Below are positions 38,856 to 64,000 of a stretch of DNA of 64,000 nucleotides, one piece after another. The stretch lies in assembly GCA_964270895.1 (NCBI GenBank), contig OZ185436.1, one strand, 5' to 3'. The number at the start of each line of letters is the position of its first letter. Within the stretch, counting starts at the first letter, position 1. This DNA is from Podarcis filfolensis (Eukaryota). A program made the position numbers and the translations under genes. The notes under the pieces were generated by a model. That model made no database searches. It was not told the origin of the DNA and saw only the letters and a program-made list of their open reading frames with translations.

Positions 38856-40806
38856 CCTGGGCTCCTTAGAGTTGGCAGCCCCTATGATTTTATGGTCCCC
38901 CACTCCTGTACTTTGTTTAGCACCCAGCCTGAGGAATAGTTTTGGAGAACTTGAAAGCTTTCTCACTATTTTGTGACTTTTTGGACACAGCAATCCTCCT
39001 GAATTCCAGTTACTGGAAATTGCAGCGGGTGTGTGTGTGTGTGTGTGTTCGTTCCTTTGCTCAAATCCTGCTTGTGGGTTTCTCATAGGCATCTGGTTGG
39101 CCACTGTGAGAACAGGATGATGGGTGAGATGGGCCCTTGGCACAATGCAGCAGGCTCTTCCTATGTTCTTATATTTTACTTGGTTCTAAGAAAGGTAATG
39201 CCTAACAGTGGATTTTGGATTCCACTCCCCCCCCCGACCTTAATGAACCAATATGTCTGCTTCCCCTCTGATCAACCCCCATTTCTGTTTCCTGTGTATG
39301 CACAGTGTCAATCCACCTATCTGCACCATCCCTGTGCATTGCTGTTGCAGGACACCTTGAAGTACTAACCAGTCTGGGCTGGATGATTAGGGTGTTAGTA
39401 ACCAATATTTATTTATAGGATAATAAATGTGCATCGCATACATCACTTTCGTTTATCCTTCGTGCAGTGGGTTGGAGAACAAACATCATCAGCACCTATA
39501 CTTCCCAAGAGTCATATCTCCATTATTCAGCTGCAGTTCTATCTGCGATACTAAACATTATTCTCCGGACGATGATTTCTCTGTTGTGTCACAACATCAT
39601 TTCTTTTCTTGGAGGACATCCCTATTTCCTTTGCTATGTTTTAAGTACATACAGGAGAGAAAGAGAGAGAGACTGATGGGTTCTGGGAGTAAAATGGCTC
39701 ACTTGTATGCTACTACTGGCAGTAAAAATGGATTTGATAGGCAGCGACATTCCAAAACCTTCATATGGAAACGAGATTCGAGTCATGTCAATCATTTACT
39801 TTTCAGCAATTCTAAATGTGCCAGCATCAAACAGCGACATCCATCTACCCCAGTACAAAAATGGTAGCATCAATATGACTGTTCCTCCTAGATAAAGGTG
39901 AAGTGTATATCACAAAGGAGCACATCAGAAGTGGAAGAAAACTAGATCACACAGTCAACGGCATCCATTCTCAATGTGAATATCCACAGGGGAGAAATAT
40001 AACGAGGACCCAAATGAATGACATCCTTCTGAATCAAGGAGAAAGGGGCAAGCTACATCAGCAACAAAAGCCCCTGCCATAGGATCAGACTTCTGGGGAT
40101 CACGAGACAGAAAGATGCGTTCACAATACATATATCAAATTAACTATGATGTGTCAGAAAAGAAAGCAGAATTTCCTGGATATTTTTTTGTCAAATGTAG
40201 CATGAATTTACCAAGGTTAGAGGTGTTGGGTTTTTTGGAAATTTAGCAGGTACAAACCTCACTTTTTTTTCTACGCAGGAAATTCAGGACGGAAATGGAA
40301 ATTTTATTTATGGCAGGATAGATTTATTATGCATTAGTCACTTCATTATGCAATAGTTTGACATCAGAAACAATCCATAAAATACAGCTCACTACTTATT
40401 TACCTATTTCTATAACACTTCCAATATACTCCATACTTGACACCTTAATCTCGTCCATTCTAACAGCAACCGTGTGTTCCCCAGGAACATTGATGTTATT
40501 ATCATTTTACAGGTGAGAAATAGAAGATGAGATGAGACAAGTTGGCCAAGGCTTCTGATTCACACCTGCAGCCTTCTTGCTTCTCCAGCCAAAGAGATGA
40601 TCATGCAGCCAGTGCTCCCCCCCCACTTCTAAATAGAACTGATCACTAGTTAAGTGACTTGCAGATGAGAATGAGGTACCTATGCCTCTTTTTCCTACAA
40701 TAGACTGTCTGTCCAGCGAATACATAAATACTGTGGGACGAAAACATTGTTAGTGCTTAATATTTTGGGAGATGAAAAGGAAACATAACATCAAAAGAAC
40801 TGGTTA

Positions 40807-41047
40807 CAGTGGTACCTCAGGTTACAGATGCTTCAGGTTACAAACGGTTCAGGTTACAGACTCCGCTAACCCAGAAATAGTACCTTGGGTTAAGAACTTT
40901 GCTTCAGGATGAGAACAGAAATCGTGCTCCGGCGGTGCAGCGGCAGTGGGAAGCCCCATTAGCTAAAGTGGTGCTTCAGGTTAAGAACAGTTTCAGCTAA
41001 GAATGGACCTCCGGAATGAATTAAGTTCTTAACCAGAGGTACCACTA
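40807..41047. mobile_element. Tc1/mariner (Tigger/pogo-like) MITE, ~241 bp, TA TSD
   Basis: TIR CAGTGGTACCTC(A/G)GGTTA. Near-identical copies at 57645 and 62906. Confidence 0.9.
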
Positions 41048-57590: not shown

Positions 57591-57644
57591 AAGGAGACTG
57601 GAGGGAGGGAAAGTGAAATAATAGCATTAGAATGAAACTTTGTA

Positions 57645-57886
57645 CAGTGGTACCTCGGGTTACATACCCTTCAGGTTACATACACTTCAGGTTACAGACT
57701 CCGCTAACCCAGAAATAGTACCTCGGGTTAAGAACTTTGCTTCAGGATGAGAACAGAAATCGTGCTCCGGTGGCGCAGCAGCAGCGGGAGGCCCCATTAG
57801 CTAAAGTGGCGCTTCAGGTTAAGAACAGTTTCAGGTTAAGTACAGACCTCCAGAATGAATTAAGTACTTAACCCGAGGTACCACTG
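57645..57886. mobile_element. Tc1/mariner (Tigger-like) MITE, 242 bp, TA TSD
   Basis: Perfect 18-bp TIR CAGTGGTACCTCGGGTTA, TA on both sides. Confidence 0.92.
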
Positions 57887-58392
57887 TACAGACAAGAAAC
57901 TTCAGTGGCTTTAGCCTGAAGTGGTTGAAAACCCATGGATTAGCCCAAGGTCACCCAAGACTTCCAGAGAACAGTAGGAACCAGGTAAATTTATGCCAAA
58001 CCCCTAGTGAAATTAGCATTCATTATTGTTGTTGATGTTTCCTTGGAAATGGAAAGGCAATAAACAAACCAAGAGCATGAATGTGCCCGGCCAAAACTGT
58101 CGAAAGCATAGAAGAAGTAGAAGCAGATGTGGCTTGCAAGGAAGAGGAAAGTGCCAACTGAAGAAGCTGGTTGCACTGAGTGCCTGGCTTGTCACTGCAA
58201 TATAGAGGCAATGAAGATGATTTAATGGGGTTTTTTTGGCTTTGGCTTTAAGAATGCATAGGTAGCAGCAAGAGTTCGCAGCATGGCTCTGAATTTGAAG
58301 TCAGGGACTCAGGATGAAGAATGTTGTGTGAAAGGAGACGTTCTGGATGACAGTAAAGGAGGGGCTGCATCCGGCTCTGCCAATGCCATACT

Positions 58393-58750
58393 TTGGGACT
58401 GGTGCCCAAGAATGCCCTGGGTAAGAACAGACTCACATCTCATCTGTCTTATCTGAAGGGAGCATCTGTTAATTATGCTCCAGAATTATGCTCAGTTGAG
58501 CATGCATCTTTTGACCATGGTGCAAAAGGACCCCAGAGCTCTTTTGGCCAAGTGCGACGTAAAATCTCCCTTCAAGCTTTTGCCTGTGCATCACGATGAC
58601 TTTGATCTGTTGGGATTTGCATTTGAAGGTGAATTCTGCTTGGGCAAGGCTCTTCTGATGAGACGCTCCATTTAATTTTTGGAATGGTGCTTGAGGCAGA
58701 GAATGGAAAATGCAGCAGCCACACATTATTTTGAGGATTCCCTGTTTGGA
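58393..58750 (+). pseudogene. Decayed DIRS/Ngaro-type reverse transcriptase fragment
   Basis: Across a frameshift: LGLVPKNALGKNRLTSHLSYLKGASVN...ELCSVEHASFD / ALLAKCDVKSPFKLLPVHHDDFDLLGF...KALLM, then HYFEDSLF at 58724-58747 at the HYLDDFLF position. Confidence 0.8.
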
Positions 58751-59327
58751 GTGATAGACTTCAGCACGTCAGAGTGCTGTTAGCTGTACACCCAGAAGTT
58801 AACTGGCATGGTGGGGAGACCCGTAATACAAAACAAAACAGGATGTCCATAATCAAACTTGTCTTTTTGGTTTTTGAACCAGGGGCCACCAACACTTCTG
58901 GGTCTGTGGGCACATTTGGCAATTCTCATGGGCTGTCATGGCTAATCACAAACTTGCCTAAGAAATTGAGTGCAAGGCAGAGGCTGGCATTCAGCCCAAA
59001 ATGTCAAACAGAATATTTGACCCCTGTTAGCAGAACAAAATACCCATTGCTCATCAGACAAACTGAATAGGATGAGGCAGTCTTATCCCAAAGTGCCATC
59101 CACCATTGCCTCCCTTCCTTGTTCTCTCACTCACACAACAATTACTGCCTTCCTTCCTATGGTTGCAATACTATGCCTGCCTGCACGGGAACAAGTCCCA
59201 CTGTGCAAGATTGCTCTGTCTAGCCCACTACTCTCACCCATTCAAGCACCCTCTCCTCAATGTTATTCTCATGGATGGCATTCTTGCTCCCACTTGCCAA
59301 GCTCAACTAGTCCTGTCACCCATTCAT

Positions 59328-59498
59328 AGGGACATGAGAAACTGCCTAATATTGCACCAGACGCATTGGTCGATCTACCTCAGTGCTGCTTTACTGACTG
59401 GCAGCAGCTCTCCTGGGTACCTGAAGATGCCAGGGGTTGAACCTGGGACCTGAGATCTTCTGCATGTAAGGCATAAACTCTACCACTGAGCTATGGCC
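59328..59498 (-). mobile_element. Squam3-like tRNA-derived SINE
   Basis: Minus head ggccatagctcagtggtagag...ggttcaaccc. Confidence 0.72.
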
Positions 59499-60091
59499 AC
59501 ACATTCCTTCCCTGGGATGTCCTTTGCCTGGCACCTCTCAATGAAAGTACAACAGCTAATAGCACACTGAAAGCAGAATAGCAGCAGCAGGAACTGCACA
59601 CAACCAGAAGGCTGCAAATGAATCCATGTATGGTGCTTGCAGACAGCACAATGGTTGTGGTTCGAGGACCCGATCCCTGCAATGTGAAATGAATACACAA
59701 GGACACGTGATATAAGGTTAATGGGCAAGAAAAGGCCACAACTTTATTGATTACAGCAAGTGAAAAGGTATTGGCTTAGGCATTGGATTACGTCAGCTGA
59801 CTCCACCCCCTCAGAGAGGGGTGAGTCTAAAACAAGGGGGGTTTATTCACCAGTAGGTGGAGCCTGTTGATGCTAATTCAACTATAGGCTCTCCCCTGAT
59901 GTCACCGAGGGTCGTGCCATGGCCTCCCGCCAAGCAGGCATCGGACAGAATACACGACCGCCAGATTCCTTTAACGGAATACCCCCAAATTGAAGGCATA
60001 GGCGATGGCCACACCTAGCCCTTCAACACCACAACACATTATTCCAATGCCTAACCGCCATCCGAGCCTAAAAGGCTCGCTGCCAATACCC

Positions 60092-60656
60092 TCACAGCTG
60101 TAACCAATCCCTGATGCTGCTGATGACGCTATCTAACCAGATGTCATTCCCCTGGTCTGAGAGATGAACCCCGTCATTCCGATACAAGGCCTGGTCGCCA
60201 ATCCAGATACGGTCATGATAAATGACTCGGCCATTCATAAAGCGCACCCAACGGGATATTGCCCAATTTAAGAGTTTCCTGGTTTTTTCAATGGCCATAC
60301 AGTTCTGCGCACCGCGCCAAACAATTCTCTTCAGGAAGGAGGACCAGAACACCGTTGTTCCGGGACACAAGGCAGCAATCGCATCCAAGTCTCTTTTTAT
60401 GTTCCACAACAAGTCCGCACTTCTTCTGTTAACAAGGTCATTCTCCCCTAATTGAATGATAAGGATGTCGGGAGGGCCGAATGTGGCTACTTTCTCCCTC
60501 AGCAATGGCGTAAGCTCTTCCCAATGCATGCCTCGTCTCGAAAACCAGGAAACTCGAACCCCAGGTGGCAAACCAAGATTAGGAGTGAGGCCGCAGCTGA
60601 CCGCCCGTACGCGGGCCCAATGGACTATACTGTGGCCGCAAATCCACACACTTCTC
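60092..60656 (-). CDS. SGNH/GDSL-type hydrolase ORF (~187 codons, no ATG; begins at a splice acceptor)
   Basis: Four SGNH blocks: WICGHS (Ser), RRGM (Gly), QLGENDL (Asn), DGVHL (Asp/His). Confidence 0.85.
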
Positions 60657-60723
60657 CTGAAAACAGATGAGAATGAAAAGGAAAGAAAAACGGGTAAGTA
60701 GGGGTAATGTAGCAGAGCGTATT

Positions 60724-61629
60724 CTAGTGAATATAACCTTTATAAGCATCGGATTTCCACCGGCCCATTTCCTTAATCTTATCCATGGGCAGACCCAAGC
60801 GTGCAGCTGTTGTGGCGGCACCAATCCTGAATGAGTGTGCAGCATAATCCTGGGAAGATAAACCACAAGCATCAATAGCTTTGCGGAGTACCCTTGTGAA
60901 TTGGTGTCTCAATAAAGGTGACCCATCTTCGTGAACCAGAAGCGGACCCAGGCCAGGCGGTCTGAGGTAAAGGTACCGCCTAGTGTCCTTGACCGGGCAT
61001 GGGCCCTGCTGCGCTGACGCTGTAGGTTTAACAAGAACACCCCTACTGGCCTGATCAGTTTTGGATTGACGTATCCGCACCGTCATGCTAGTTTCGGACA
61101 ACTGCACGTCCTCCATAAGGAGGCCGCGCGTTGAGCCGTTTGCGCTAACCTCGACTACAACTTCGCCAACTCTCAGGGCGCCAAAAAAGGCAATAGCATA
61201 TGCTGCAGAAAAGAGGTGGGCCTCAAACTTGGTCCAGCAGATTGACCTAAGCTTTGTGCGTATCTGAGAGAGCAACCCATAAGAAATTGGCTTACGGACC
61301 TCGGCCCTAGGGGGTTGTAGCCTGCCCCAACCCTCAATAGCTCTGCGGATTAGGAAGTCACTGCACAGATTGGAGGAAAATGTGGCTTTAGCAAAGAAGC
61401 TGATGGCGGCTACATGTATCTTTAAAGTTTTGGGGGCACGTCCCAAATCATCGAGATGGGAAAGGTATTGCAGAACGTCGTCAGTGGTGAGTGGCACGCT
61501 AGGTGAAAGCCCGGATACCCCAGACCTGAAGCCCAAGAAATTGCACCAGGCCTTCTTGTAAGACCTGAGAGTGGAGGGTGCGACAGACGCTAATACTCCC
61601 TTAGTCACTTTGCGTCTCCAATGTTCCAC
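60724..61629 (-). CDS. Tyrosine recombinase (301 aa), overlapping the RNase H ORF by 25 nt
   Basis: N-terminal SAM-like core-binding region (STLRSYKKAW), GALRVGE (R), SKTDQ (K), HSFRIGAAT (HxxR), GRWKSDAYKGY (W, Y). No stops. Confidence 0.93.
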   Translation of the reverse strand: MEHWRRKVTKGVLASVAPSTLRSYKKAWCNFLGFRSGVSGLSPSVPLTTDDVLQYLSHLDDLGRAPKTLKIHVAAISFFAKATFSSNLCSDFLIRRAIEGWGRLQPPRAEVRKPISYGLLSQIRTKLRSICWTKFEAHLFSAAYAIAFFGALRVGEVVVEVSANGSTRGLLMEDVQLSETSMTVRIRQSKTDQASRGVLVKPTASAQQGPCPVKDTRRYLYLRPPGLGPLLVHEDGSPLLRHQFTRVLRKAIDACGLSSQDYAAHSFRIGAATTAARLGLPMDKIKEMGRWKSDAYKGYIH

Positions 61630-62354
61630 AGGTGCTCCGGAAAGGGTTCGGGCAACGGTTGCGCTCCAGGTGCAAGCGACCGGAAGCGAGACATCTGAAA
61701 GCGAGACAAGGCATCAGCTATATCATTTTTGATCCCTGGTATAAATTTGGCTGAAAAAATTATGTTATACTCAAGGCACCGGAGAACGAACGCCCGCAGA
61801 AGGGAGGAGACCCTTGCAGATCGAGATGACTGCCTAGCCAGTATGTTCACCACCGCTTGGTTGTCGGTTCTGAAGCACACCCGGCGATTTCGAAACTCCT
61901 CCGTCCAGATATGTACGGCCACTACTATTGGAAAAAACTCAAGAAAAGTGAGATCCCGCGTGATGGCCTCGCCCTGCCACCCCGTTGGCCATCGTTGAGT
62001 GCACCATCGTCCCCTAAAGTACAAGCCAAAGCCCAGGGATCCTGCTGCATCTGATTGAACCTGGAAATCTGAAGACAAGTTAAGAACATCGTGCCATAGG
62101 GATACTCCATTGTAGTGGTCCAAAAATGTTAACCAAACCTCTAGGTCCGCCTTAACTGACTTGGGAAGTCGGACCCTGTGGTGTGGGTGCTTGAGACCTA
62201 CTGAAAGCCTGGCCAGGCGGGCGCAGAAGGGGTGTCCAGGGGAAACTACTCTGCAAGCGAAATTAAAATGACCTAACAGGGATTGTATCTGTCTAAGAGT
62301 GACCTTTTTTAGCGTAAGGGTAGTTCGGATTAGGAGGGGCTGGCGCTGCAGCAT
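61605..62354 (-). CDS. Retroelement RT-connection/RNase H ORF (249 aa; RT palm absent)
   Basis: KKVTLRQIQSLLGHFNFAC tether. RNase H acidic residues in SDAA, FLEFFP, TDNQAVV and NDIADALSR all present. Confidence 0.88.
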   Translation of the reverse strand: MLQRQPLLIRTTLTLKKVTLRQIQSLLGHFNFACRVVSPGHPFCARLARLSVGLKHPHHRVRLPKSVKADLEVWLTFLDHYNGVSLWHDVLNLSSDFQVQSDAAGSLGFGLYFRGRWCTQRWPTGWQGEAITRDLTFLEFFPIVVAVHIWTEEFRNRRVCFRTDNQAVVNILARQSSRSARVSSLLRAFVLRCLEYNIIFSAKFIPGIKNDIADALSRFQMSRFRSLAPGAQPLPEPFPEHLWNIGDAK

Positions 62355-62905
62355 TTACTCTGCTGTACACGCCCCCTCGGAGGCACCTGGTTGGGTGCCT
62401 GCCGATGGGCGTGGGCGCCAGCCAGGTGAGTGGGAGGCAGGGGGCTAACGCCCCCTGCTAGAGGTGGAGCTCGGGCTCCCGCCCACAACCATTCCCCTCT
62501 CTTCCAGGAGGAGAGTCCATATCACAAGTAATTGAGAAGCACCATGGAACAGTGTTTGCAACTCTCGTTCGTGACCCCAGTATTAGGCATTGTGAAAGGA
62601 GTTTCTAGGTTACCAGTGAGATGGGTGGAGTAAACAGTCTGAGAATGCTAAAAAGATAAAAAGTAAGAAAGAAAATCACACGCGATGGTTCTAAGGCAGG
62701 CTCCCATGCCTGATTATACATATCCACAGTGGGTAGGGGAACTCCACATTATTTTATGAGTGCACCCTTAGGGTGGGAGAGATTTCTAGCTCAGAGTTAG
62801 CAATAGAGTTGGAGGTGCTTCCAGGTGTTGCAGAAAGGTCAGGGTCTGAGTTATCTTTAAGGGACAATTACTATGCAGAATGTCCACAAACACACAAACC
62901 AACTA

Positions 62906-63147
62906 CAGTGGTACCTCGGGTTACATACGCTTCAGGTTACATATGCTTCAGGTTACACACTCCGCTAACCCAGAAATGGTGCTTCAGGTTAAGAACTTTG
63001 CTTCAGGATAAGAACAGAAATCGTGCTCTGGTGGCGTGGCAGCAGCAGGAGGCCCCATTAGCTAAAGTGGTGCTTCAGGTTAAGAACAGTTTCAGGTTAA
63101 GAACGGACCTCCGGAACGAATTAAGTACTTAACGCGAGGTACCACTG
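62906..63147. mobile_element. Tc1/mariner (Tigger-like) MITE, 242 bp, TA TSD
   Basis: TIR CAGTGGTACCTCG(G/C)GTTA, TA flanks. Third copy of the family. Confidence 0.92.
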
Positions 63148-64000
63148 TATTGATTGCCATGAACTCAAGATAGCATCCCATTTATCACCCTTGATGTTCA
63201 AGCAAACAGAAACGAGTAGAACCATTTGAGCTGCATCCAAATAGTGAAACAGAAAGGTGTAGGTCTCAAGCAGAATATGAGAGATTGTGTCCTTCAGCCC
63301 TTTGCACTGATTATTAGCAGAATAGCAAAACCACTGAAGACAGAGGGCAAGAAACAATGAAGAGAAAGTAAACTGTATATTATCGCATATAACACACAAC
63401 ACCAATAACCAATGAGCAAATATTAACTAAAAAGCAGTGAATTTATGGCCTAATGGTTCCGACCTCAGTGACCATATTTCTTCTCATGCAGATGCTCATT
63501 TACCATTACAGATAGGCCAGTGTTAAAAAAGAACGGTTGGTCATCAGATCTACCCTTCAGCAGCAAACTGATCTGTATCTTTCTGCAAAGACATACACTG
63601 ACAGCTGAAAACTGGTGCTTAAATATTACCTCCCAGAAGTGACAGGAGGAAAAAATATATACACTTCCAGTGGAACTGAGTCAGCACTTGTACTGTTAAC
63701 CTGAGAAAAAAAAGTGAAGGACATCTTCAAAAGTGAAGTTTGTTCTTGTACAGTATGAGTGGCTAGTCTTGCAGGGATGGAACTTAACCATAGTTAAGTT
63801 TATAGTTTATAGTCTGAACTTAACCATGTTAACGTGGAAATAAGTCCCGCTCTAATTCAATGCAATTTAGGCTGCAATATTAGCCCCACTTAGCTGGGCG
63901 TAGGCCCTGCTACACTTATTTCTAAGTAGACATGGTTGGGATTAAAGTCTTACTTCCTGATAGGAAAGTTTAGGATTGTAGGCTCAAAGCAAAGCATGAC

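Follow-up and report, generated by a model that had tools for sequence, protein, structure and literature searches.

Results

A young, internally deleted Ngaro-like retroelement in Podarcis filfolensis

The stretch of DNA analyzed here (hereafter the window, 64,000 nucleotides (nt) of contig OZ185436.1 from the Podarcis filfolensis assembly GCA_964270895.1) carries on its minus strand a retroelement with open reading frames (ORFs) for a predicted RNase H, a tyrosine recombinase (YR), and a predicted SGNH esterase. Our preferred reading, to which we assign a probability of roughly 0.65, is that this element is a young, lineage-specific, internally deleted Ngaro-like copy that is decaying neutrally. 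Its parts, in window coordinates and with RT denoting reverse transcriptase, are as follows.

59655..62518, minus strand: whole inserted unit, 2,864 bp, bounded by empty-site contigs in two related species
62333..62518, minus strand: GC-rich 5' terminal leader, 186 nt, inside the insert and a high-copy end of the family
62332..62333, minus strand: putative deletion junction between leader and RT thumb, placed by the start of protein homology and by a diverging sibling contig
61605..62354, minus strand: ORF1, 249 residues, ATG start; seven leader-derived codons, then predicted RT thumb/connection and RNase H
60724..61629, minus strand: ORF2, 301 residues, GTG start in the ORF list; tyrosine recombinase, its catalytic domain preceded by a SAM-like domain at the N-terminus
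60092..60649, minus strand: ORF3, 185 residues, GTG and no ATG; predicted SGNH/GDSL esterase
59655..60091, minus strand: 3' non-coding terminal region, 437 nt, with two AATAAA signals and a closed multi-helix domain of ~340 nt

Limits and age of the insertion

Contigs from three low-coverage DNA runs (X1, X4, and X6) were aligned to positions 58400-63200 and the best-supported alignments were examined. In contigs of two related species, organism B (X4 record 9) and organism D (X6 record 17), position 59654 directly abuts position 62519, which provides empty sites from two studies. Based on these empty sites, the unit 59655-62518, leader included, is a single recent insertion. A preliminary description, made from the sequence alone, had drawn the element at 59650-62493; the approximate position was right and the ends required only a slight correction. 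The site is filled in organism A, the nearest species, in which contigs from the two flanks enter the insert by 21 nt (to 59675) and by 32 nt (from 62487) and then end, the expected behavior at a repeat edge. The flanks diverge from the window by ~0.5% in organism A and by 2.5-3% in organisms B and D. The insertion postdates the split from organisms B and D.

The flanks were also compared at the empty-site limits. No target-site duplication of 59655-62518 was found, with zero bases common to both insert junctions, and this absence fits recombinase-mediated integration. The CpG observed/expected (o/e) ratio is 0.66 within the element and 0.26 for the window, in line with the abundant CpG noted earlier. 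Taken together, the empty sites, the filled site, the flank divergence, and the CpG ratio reveal that the Ngaro-like copy is young.

Short inverted matches were observed around the insertion site. An 11-nt exact inverted match pairs AATGGTTGTGG, located 26 nt inside the 5' end (62483-62493), with CCACAACCATT, located across the 3' border (59650-59660) with 5 nt of it in the flank. In addition, the target is flanked by two inverted 10-nt arms, CATGGTGCTT and AAGCACCATA, which are ~34 nt apart (62533-62547, 59625-59654). The arms and the 11-nt match could be due to chance or could hint at target choice.

The leader and its junction with the polymerase remnant

Protein homology to the RT-bearing relatives P0001, P0008, and P0076 begins at 62330-62333. 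At the same place, a sibling-copy contig of a related species (X4 record 15), which tracks the window over 62143-62332, continues into 67 nt that are unlike the window. Since the homology starts and the sibling contig diverges at this point, the ATG and first seven codons of ORF1 come from the GC-rich upstream piece. This bears out the earlier suggestion of a homology start near 62335 that is fused to GC-rich, ATG-supplying sequence, with the start now placed at 62332/62333, the fused sequence delimited as the 186-nt leader, and the ATG confirmed at 62354.

The leader holds a 16-codon upstream ORF (uORF; ATG at 62493), an in-frame TAA at 62357-62355, and the ORF1 ATG at 62354-62352. The 164 nt between the 5' end of the insert and the ORF1 ATG contain only this uORF and leave no room for a gag ORF; accordingly, no gag-like ORF is present there. 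The leader folds with a minimum free energy of -109.6 kcal/mol (z=-5.7), the closing stem reaching ~62337, beside the junction, and has a CpG o/e of ~0.5. An Rfam search returned nothing within the element.

The leader falls within the inserted unit, and in species without the insertion it occurs as a repeat, represented by dozens of contig variants; it is therefore part of the element and not host DNA. Its place within the unit bounded by the empty sites of two species, together with its standing as a high-copy family end, also upholds the earlier view that the copy did not arise by 5' truncation in the style of long interspersed elements. Since the two ends greatly exceed the coding part in abundance, we take the gap to be an internal deletion.

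A repeat search and blastn-short with a word size of 7 did not find split direct repeats of the form A1...B1-A2-B2, nor any direct repeat of ≥12 nt from the leader to the 3' region or within the 3' region. The leader was also considered as a copy of the 3' region, either as an A1/A2 pair or as an inverted terminal repeat. This candidate was rejected, as only the 11-nt inverted match described above, with 5 nt in the flank, was recovered.

Three ORFs with conserved catalytic residues

ORF1 has no match in a Pfam search. It shares 74% identity over 239 residues with the C-terminal part of P0001, a protein of 398 residues with an N-terminal RVT_1 domain. In an exhaustive profile search, relatives that carry RT and RNase H (RT/RH) were typically 530-710 residues long and the part that matches ORF1 began at residue ~300-460. 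An AlphaFold model of ORF1 based on 44 homologues has a predicted local distance difference test score (pLDDT) of 93.2, and its top structural matches are the reverse transcriptases of Ty3, HIV-1/2, and cauliflower mosaic virus (CaMV). The template modeling scores of these matches are low because the structural targets exceed ORF1 two- to threefold in length. The RNase H motifs (DAAGS, the E in FLEFFP, TDN, and NDIADALSR) fall in invariant or near-invariant columns, and the carboxylates D102, E139, and D164 are invariant or nearly so, as in an RNase H fold with a D-E-D-D active site. Amphibian relatives are 45-50% identical to the RNase H part. As judged from homology and the structural model, ORF1 is the thumb/connection and RNase H of a retroelement polymerase. 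No other part of the polymerase is present in ORF1, and its closest relatives have RVT_1 upstream of the matching part. A homology search of 59655-62518 found neither RT fingers/palm nor gag inside the insert, as the preliminary description had stated for the RT palm and gag.

ORF1 stops ~30 residues past its last RNase H motif and runs into the recombinase ORF, the two frames overlapping by 25 nt. An alignment with Cre spans the full length of ORF2, and RVGE, the K in SKTDQ, HSFRIGAA, W, and Y are all present. The Pfam families Phage_integrase and SAM_4 score 25.7 and 24.2 bits, slightly below their cut-offs of 27.1 and 27.

ORF3 retains the four SGNH blocks, GHS (S7), G40, GEND (N70), and DGVH, in columns that are invariant or near-invariant over 14 homologues. 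Its score against Pfam Lipase_GDSL_2 is 32.0 bits (cut-off 32.9). Having blocks I, II, III, and V, ORF3 is assigned by sequence as an SGNH/GDSL hydrolase. Its nearest relatives are proteins of Podarcis muralis (87%), followed by those of P. lilfordi, P. raffonei, and Zootoca. Among solved structures, ORF3 matches only the zebrafish ZfL2-1 ORF1p esterase (PDB 4c1b), and only weakly (E=0.027, residues 48-177). The two are alike in being SGNH esterases borne by retrotransposons. However, besides the weak similarity, the ZfL2-1 host element is a non-LTR (long terminal repeat) retrotransposon and its esterase is fused to ORF1p, whereas ORF3 is a separate 3' ORF. The three stop-free ORFs with catalytic residues that had been reported at this locus are thus sustained, with 249, 301, and 185 codons and motifs in conserved columns.

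Upstream of ORF3 the frame stays open as far as ~60712 (60649-60712, minus strand), where it is preceded by a pyrimidine tract and a CAG. Gene models of Podarcis muralis and P. lilfordi (P0120, P0121, and P0124) fuse N-terminal parts of the recombinase, e.g., after SKTDQ, to an SGNH exon, and the donor position in the window that corresponds to the gene-model splice reads CAG/GCCAGT. Based on the absence of an ATG, the pyrimidine tract with CAG, and the spliced gene models, the esterase may be expressed from a spliced RNA.

Assignment to the Ngaro type

The defining features of Ngaro elements are RT/RH, a tyrosine recombinase, and split direct repeats, to which those of vertebrates add an SGNH ORF (PMC9210276). 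Of the RT/RH ORF, the copy has only the predicted thumb/connection and RNase H. This remnant is followed by a YR ORF instead of an integrase and then by an SGNH ORF, and there is no methyltransferase-like domain and no target-site duplication; of the other Ngaro features, split direct repeats of the form A1...B1-A2-B2 were not found and a gag-like ORF is missing. The order RT/RH, YR, SGNH, together with the absence of a methyltransferase domain and of a target-site duplication, supports a Ngaro-type element, the type to which the preliminary description had assigned it. As they are summarized in PMC9210276 (after Goodwin and Poulter 2004), the Ngaro elements with a Hydro-SGNH ORF of Xenopus tropicalis, DIRS-53_XT and DIRS-54_XT, share with the lizard copy the order RT/RH-YR-SGNH, overlapping frames, and the absence of a methyltransferase. 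Compared with DIRS-53_XT and DIRS-54_XT as given there, the lizard copy, which belongs to a lacertid lineage, is without gag and RT fingers/palm, and split direct repeats were not found in it.

Private changes are neutral

Changes private to the window copy were defined as 20 element sites at which nearly all family contigs have one letter and the window has another. Seventeen of these best-supported sites lie in ORFs, where 12 changes are non-synonymous and 5 are synonymous, a split in agreement with the 2.48:1 expected under random substitution. A ratio of non-synonymous to synonymous substitution rates (dN/dS) of 0.2 is rejected (P=0.002). CpG transitions account for 8 of the 20. The probability that 735 codons stay free of stops at 0.75-1.5% divergence is 0.28-0.52, so that intact ORFs are unremarkable at this age. 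The copy has been decaying neutrally since insertion, and its open ORFs reflect youth and not maintenance.

The ends of the family outnumber its coding part

The summed contig depth in X1 is ~90 for the single-copy flank, ~10,000 for the coding part, ~72,000 for the 5' end bin, and ~476,000 for 59688-60009; X4 and X6 display similar proportions. Across the three species, 62425-62585 has a summed depth ~800 to 2,700 times that of the single-copy flank, and 59688-60009, the most abundant part of the family, ~5,000 to 13,000 times. The end pieces are hence ~10-50 times commoner than the coding part in all three species. Position 62465 is covered by 32-71 distinct contigs in species without this insertion. 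The excess of 59688-60009 and 62425-62518 points to solo ends or to a short, SIRE-like non-autonomous relative present in high numbers, and termini-bearing derivatives that lack the coding part appear, by depth, to dominate the family. The 3' region folds better than shuffled sequence (z=-3.6), and subfamilies differ in a 46-74-nt block at 59789-59862.

Relative to the flank, the coding-region depth in the nearest species is ~3-4 times that in organism B, which indicates that the family was recently active. An RNA run of another species gave low sense-strand coverage of the family coding part by reads that are 85-95% alike. The family is transcribed in that species; the run is uninformative on the window copy.

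Neighboring repeats

By far the most abundant sequence in 58400-63200 is a 246 bp element that resembles a miniature inverted-repeat transposable element (MITE), with terminal inverted repeats of 25-27 nt. Copies at 57643-57888 and 62904-63149 are 92% alike and a partial copy is located at 40805-40901. Its summed depth is in the millions in the three DNA runs, it is represented by thousands of RNA reads on both strands, and at 63149/62904 many contigs show joints that are tandem or nested. Directly next to the insert, at its 3' border, is the tRNA-derived head of a short interspersed element (~59400-59560, minus strand), with an Rfam tRNA match at 59430-59493 (29.1 bits) and no ARAGORN gene. 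It is high-copy in all runs and belongs to the pre-insertion flank.

A decayed RT fragment of the DIRS/Ngaro type lies at 58432-58867 on the plus strand, 800 bp from the young copy and in opposite orientation. It is ~37% identical to P0008 residues 1-162, has stops, a frameshift, a changed YxDD box, and a CpG o/e of 0.2-0.3, and is single-copy and present at the empty sites. The fragment matches P0008 residues 1-162 and ORF1 matches from residue 187, and a single element split by inversion was therefore considered. This candidate was rejected, since the fragment is only ~37% identical, decayed, single-copy, and part of the empty-site flank; it is an older, unrelated relic. DIRS-type elements have been reported to insert near older copies. 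We judge the closeness of the two here to be a coincidence.

Discussion

How the copy may have formed

In the reading that we prefer, an internal deletion would have removed gag and roughly 310-450 codons of the RT fingers/palm, an extent that is estimated from relatives. Through this deletion the leader and the RT thumb would have become fused at 62333/62332, the leader ATG remaining in frame by chance, while both family ends and the 3' two-thirds of the coding part (RT thumb and RNase H, tyrosine recombinase, and SGNH esterase) would have been kept. Very probably the deletion preceded integration, which is favored by the short time since insertion and by the dominance of deleted forms in the family. 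It may have been inherited from a deleted parent copy or have arisen by a template switch in the same replication round. The deleted RNA or cDNA, having both ends, would then have been copied and integrated using the RT and gag of full-length siblings, and the recombinase may also have been supplied in trans.

A precedent for these steps comes from Dictyostelium, in which trDIRS-1, a construct engineered without ORF1 and half of ORF2/3, was mobilized in trans by the proteins of endogenous copies (PMC7192593). Mobilization of trDIRS-1 required the internal junction-bearing region (ICR) (PMC7192593). Both trDIRS-1 and the window copy have an internal deletion of upstream coding sequence and part of the pol region (ORF1 in the case of DIRS-1) with the ends kept (PMC7192593), and by analogy the window copy would be a natural counterpart of the construct. 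The systems differ in that trDIRS-1 is engineered and belongs to another superfamily, with inverted repeats and an ICR, and in that its mobility was observed directly whereas that of the lizard copy is deduced. By the same analogy with the DIRS-1 ICR, the copy, which has no detectable A/B repeats, would be a poor template for a further round. Whether the leader/thumb junction recurs at other loci is doubtful in our estimation, though not strongly so.

Several points weigh against this reading. Among the contigs listed from the three DNA runs, none bridges the 62333 junction. Position and abundance are the grounds for taking the leader as the true 5' end of the autonomous element. Without split direct repeats, the end structure of the copy is atypical or incomplete, which may hold for this copy alone. 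Finally, the depth sums give a clear order of magnitude and not strict copy numbers, and the 20 private sites come from a longer list, of which they are the best supported.

Alternative explanations

The alternative that survives best is a transposing RT-less subfamily, in which a deleted master with the same leader/thumb junction would be found at several loci and would borrow RT and gag. In a strong form of this idea, the three encoded enzymes would be selected because each works preferentially on its own encoding RNA or DNA. The copy does have both family ends and inserted as a unit, termini-bearing derivatives propagate in the family, the family was recently active, as the ~3-4-fold higher coding depth of the nearest species relative to organism B indicates, and trans-mobilization of a truncated DIRS-1 has been proven (PMC7192593). 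However, the copy has no B1-A2 internal junction, and with the analogous ICR being essential in DIRS-1, it looks like a dead end. A 24-mer across the junction (62344-62321) had no match in JGI metagenome contigs, a search there for loci related to ORF1 was also negative, and a protein search with the first 80 residues of ORF1, aimed at short predicted proteins from small contigs, gave no match; as these searches could not see lizard genomes, the negatives are uninformative. The strong form is further opposed, for this lineage, by the neutral private changes. We consider a subfamily of this kind unlikely, if still worth entertaining. Of the two options left by the preliminary description, a non-autonomous form is thus plausible in its weak version, mobilization in trans, whereas a maintained three-enzyme module finds no support, given the 12:5 split, which fits neutrality, the rejection of dN/dS=0.2 (P=0.002), and the youth that by itself accounts for the intact ORFs.

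The other option was that a full-length copy inserted and then lost ~2 kb, comprising gag and the RT palm, by ordinary genomic deletion. The final structure would be identical, and small indels between species do occur in the flanks. The time available is short, however, as the copy is absent from species that are only 2.5-3% diverged, a scale at which we estimate multi-kb deletions to be rare, and deleted derivatives dominate the new insertions of the family. The copy is young, as had been proposed, but with termini-bearing derivatives outnumbering coding copies, a deletion after insertion has a low probability. Less probable again is the most far-reaching scenario, in which an active lacertid Ngaro lineage would exist as a trans-mobilized deletion series that extends from an RT-less subfamily with this exact junction, using its own RNase H, recombinase, and esterase in cis and borrowing just polymerase and gag, down to SIRE-like, termini-only elements in thousands of copies.

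The copy could also derive from a spliced subgenomic RNA that was reverse transcribed and integrated, 62333/62332 being an exon-exon joint. Splicing in the family is suggested by the Podarcis muralis gene models P0120 and P0121, which join a YR N-terminal part to the SGNH exon, and by the position of ORF3, without an ATG, behind a pyrimidine tract and CAG. On the other hand, the exon would end in ...CCTCC, a poor donor context, the product of seven leader codons and a polymerase-less thumb/RNase H has no evident use, and no listed read of the RNA run, which is from another species, carries the joint. We regard this origin as very improbable. Even less credible is an assembly artifact in which repeat collapse dropped gag and RT from a full-length copy: the interior is repetitive and no listed independent contig spans the junction, but both insert borders are confirmed independently in another data set, the ORFs and leader join without N or frame damage, and the closing stem of the leader ends at the junction. 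A host-gene or domesticated reading was rejected, the insertion being absent from close species and the changes neutral.

Implications for lacertid Ngaro elements

Taken alone, the copy is one fairly ordinary defective transposon. The finding would have been special had the copy been a maintained RT-less three-enzyme module, for which the substitution pattern gives no support. What is new here are the limits of the insert with its empty sites, the excess of end pieces, and the neutral private changes. The short non-autonomous relative, if it is real, would be more notable than this copy. It would resemble SIRE/VIPER of Trypanosoma cruzi (PMC6681497), a YR retroelement whose 5' and 3' end pieces form a far commoner short non-autonomous element. 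The lizard case differs in that the window copy is an intermediate that still has three ORFs and that the short element is deduced from depth.

The value of the locus is that it offers a dated and exactly bounded insertion of a vertebrate YR retroelement, without target-site duplication and with the empty site kept in related species. It reveals that a Ngaro family has been very recently active in lacertid lizards, and its empty and filled sites provide a clean pair of substrate and product with which to study the integration of these poorly understood elements.

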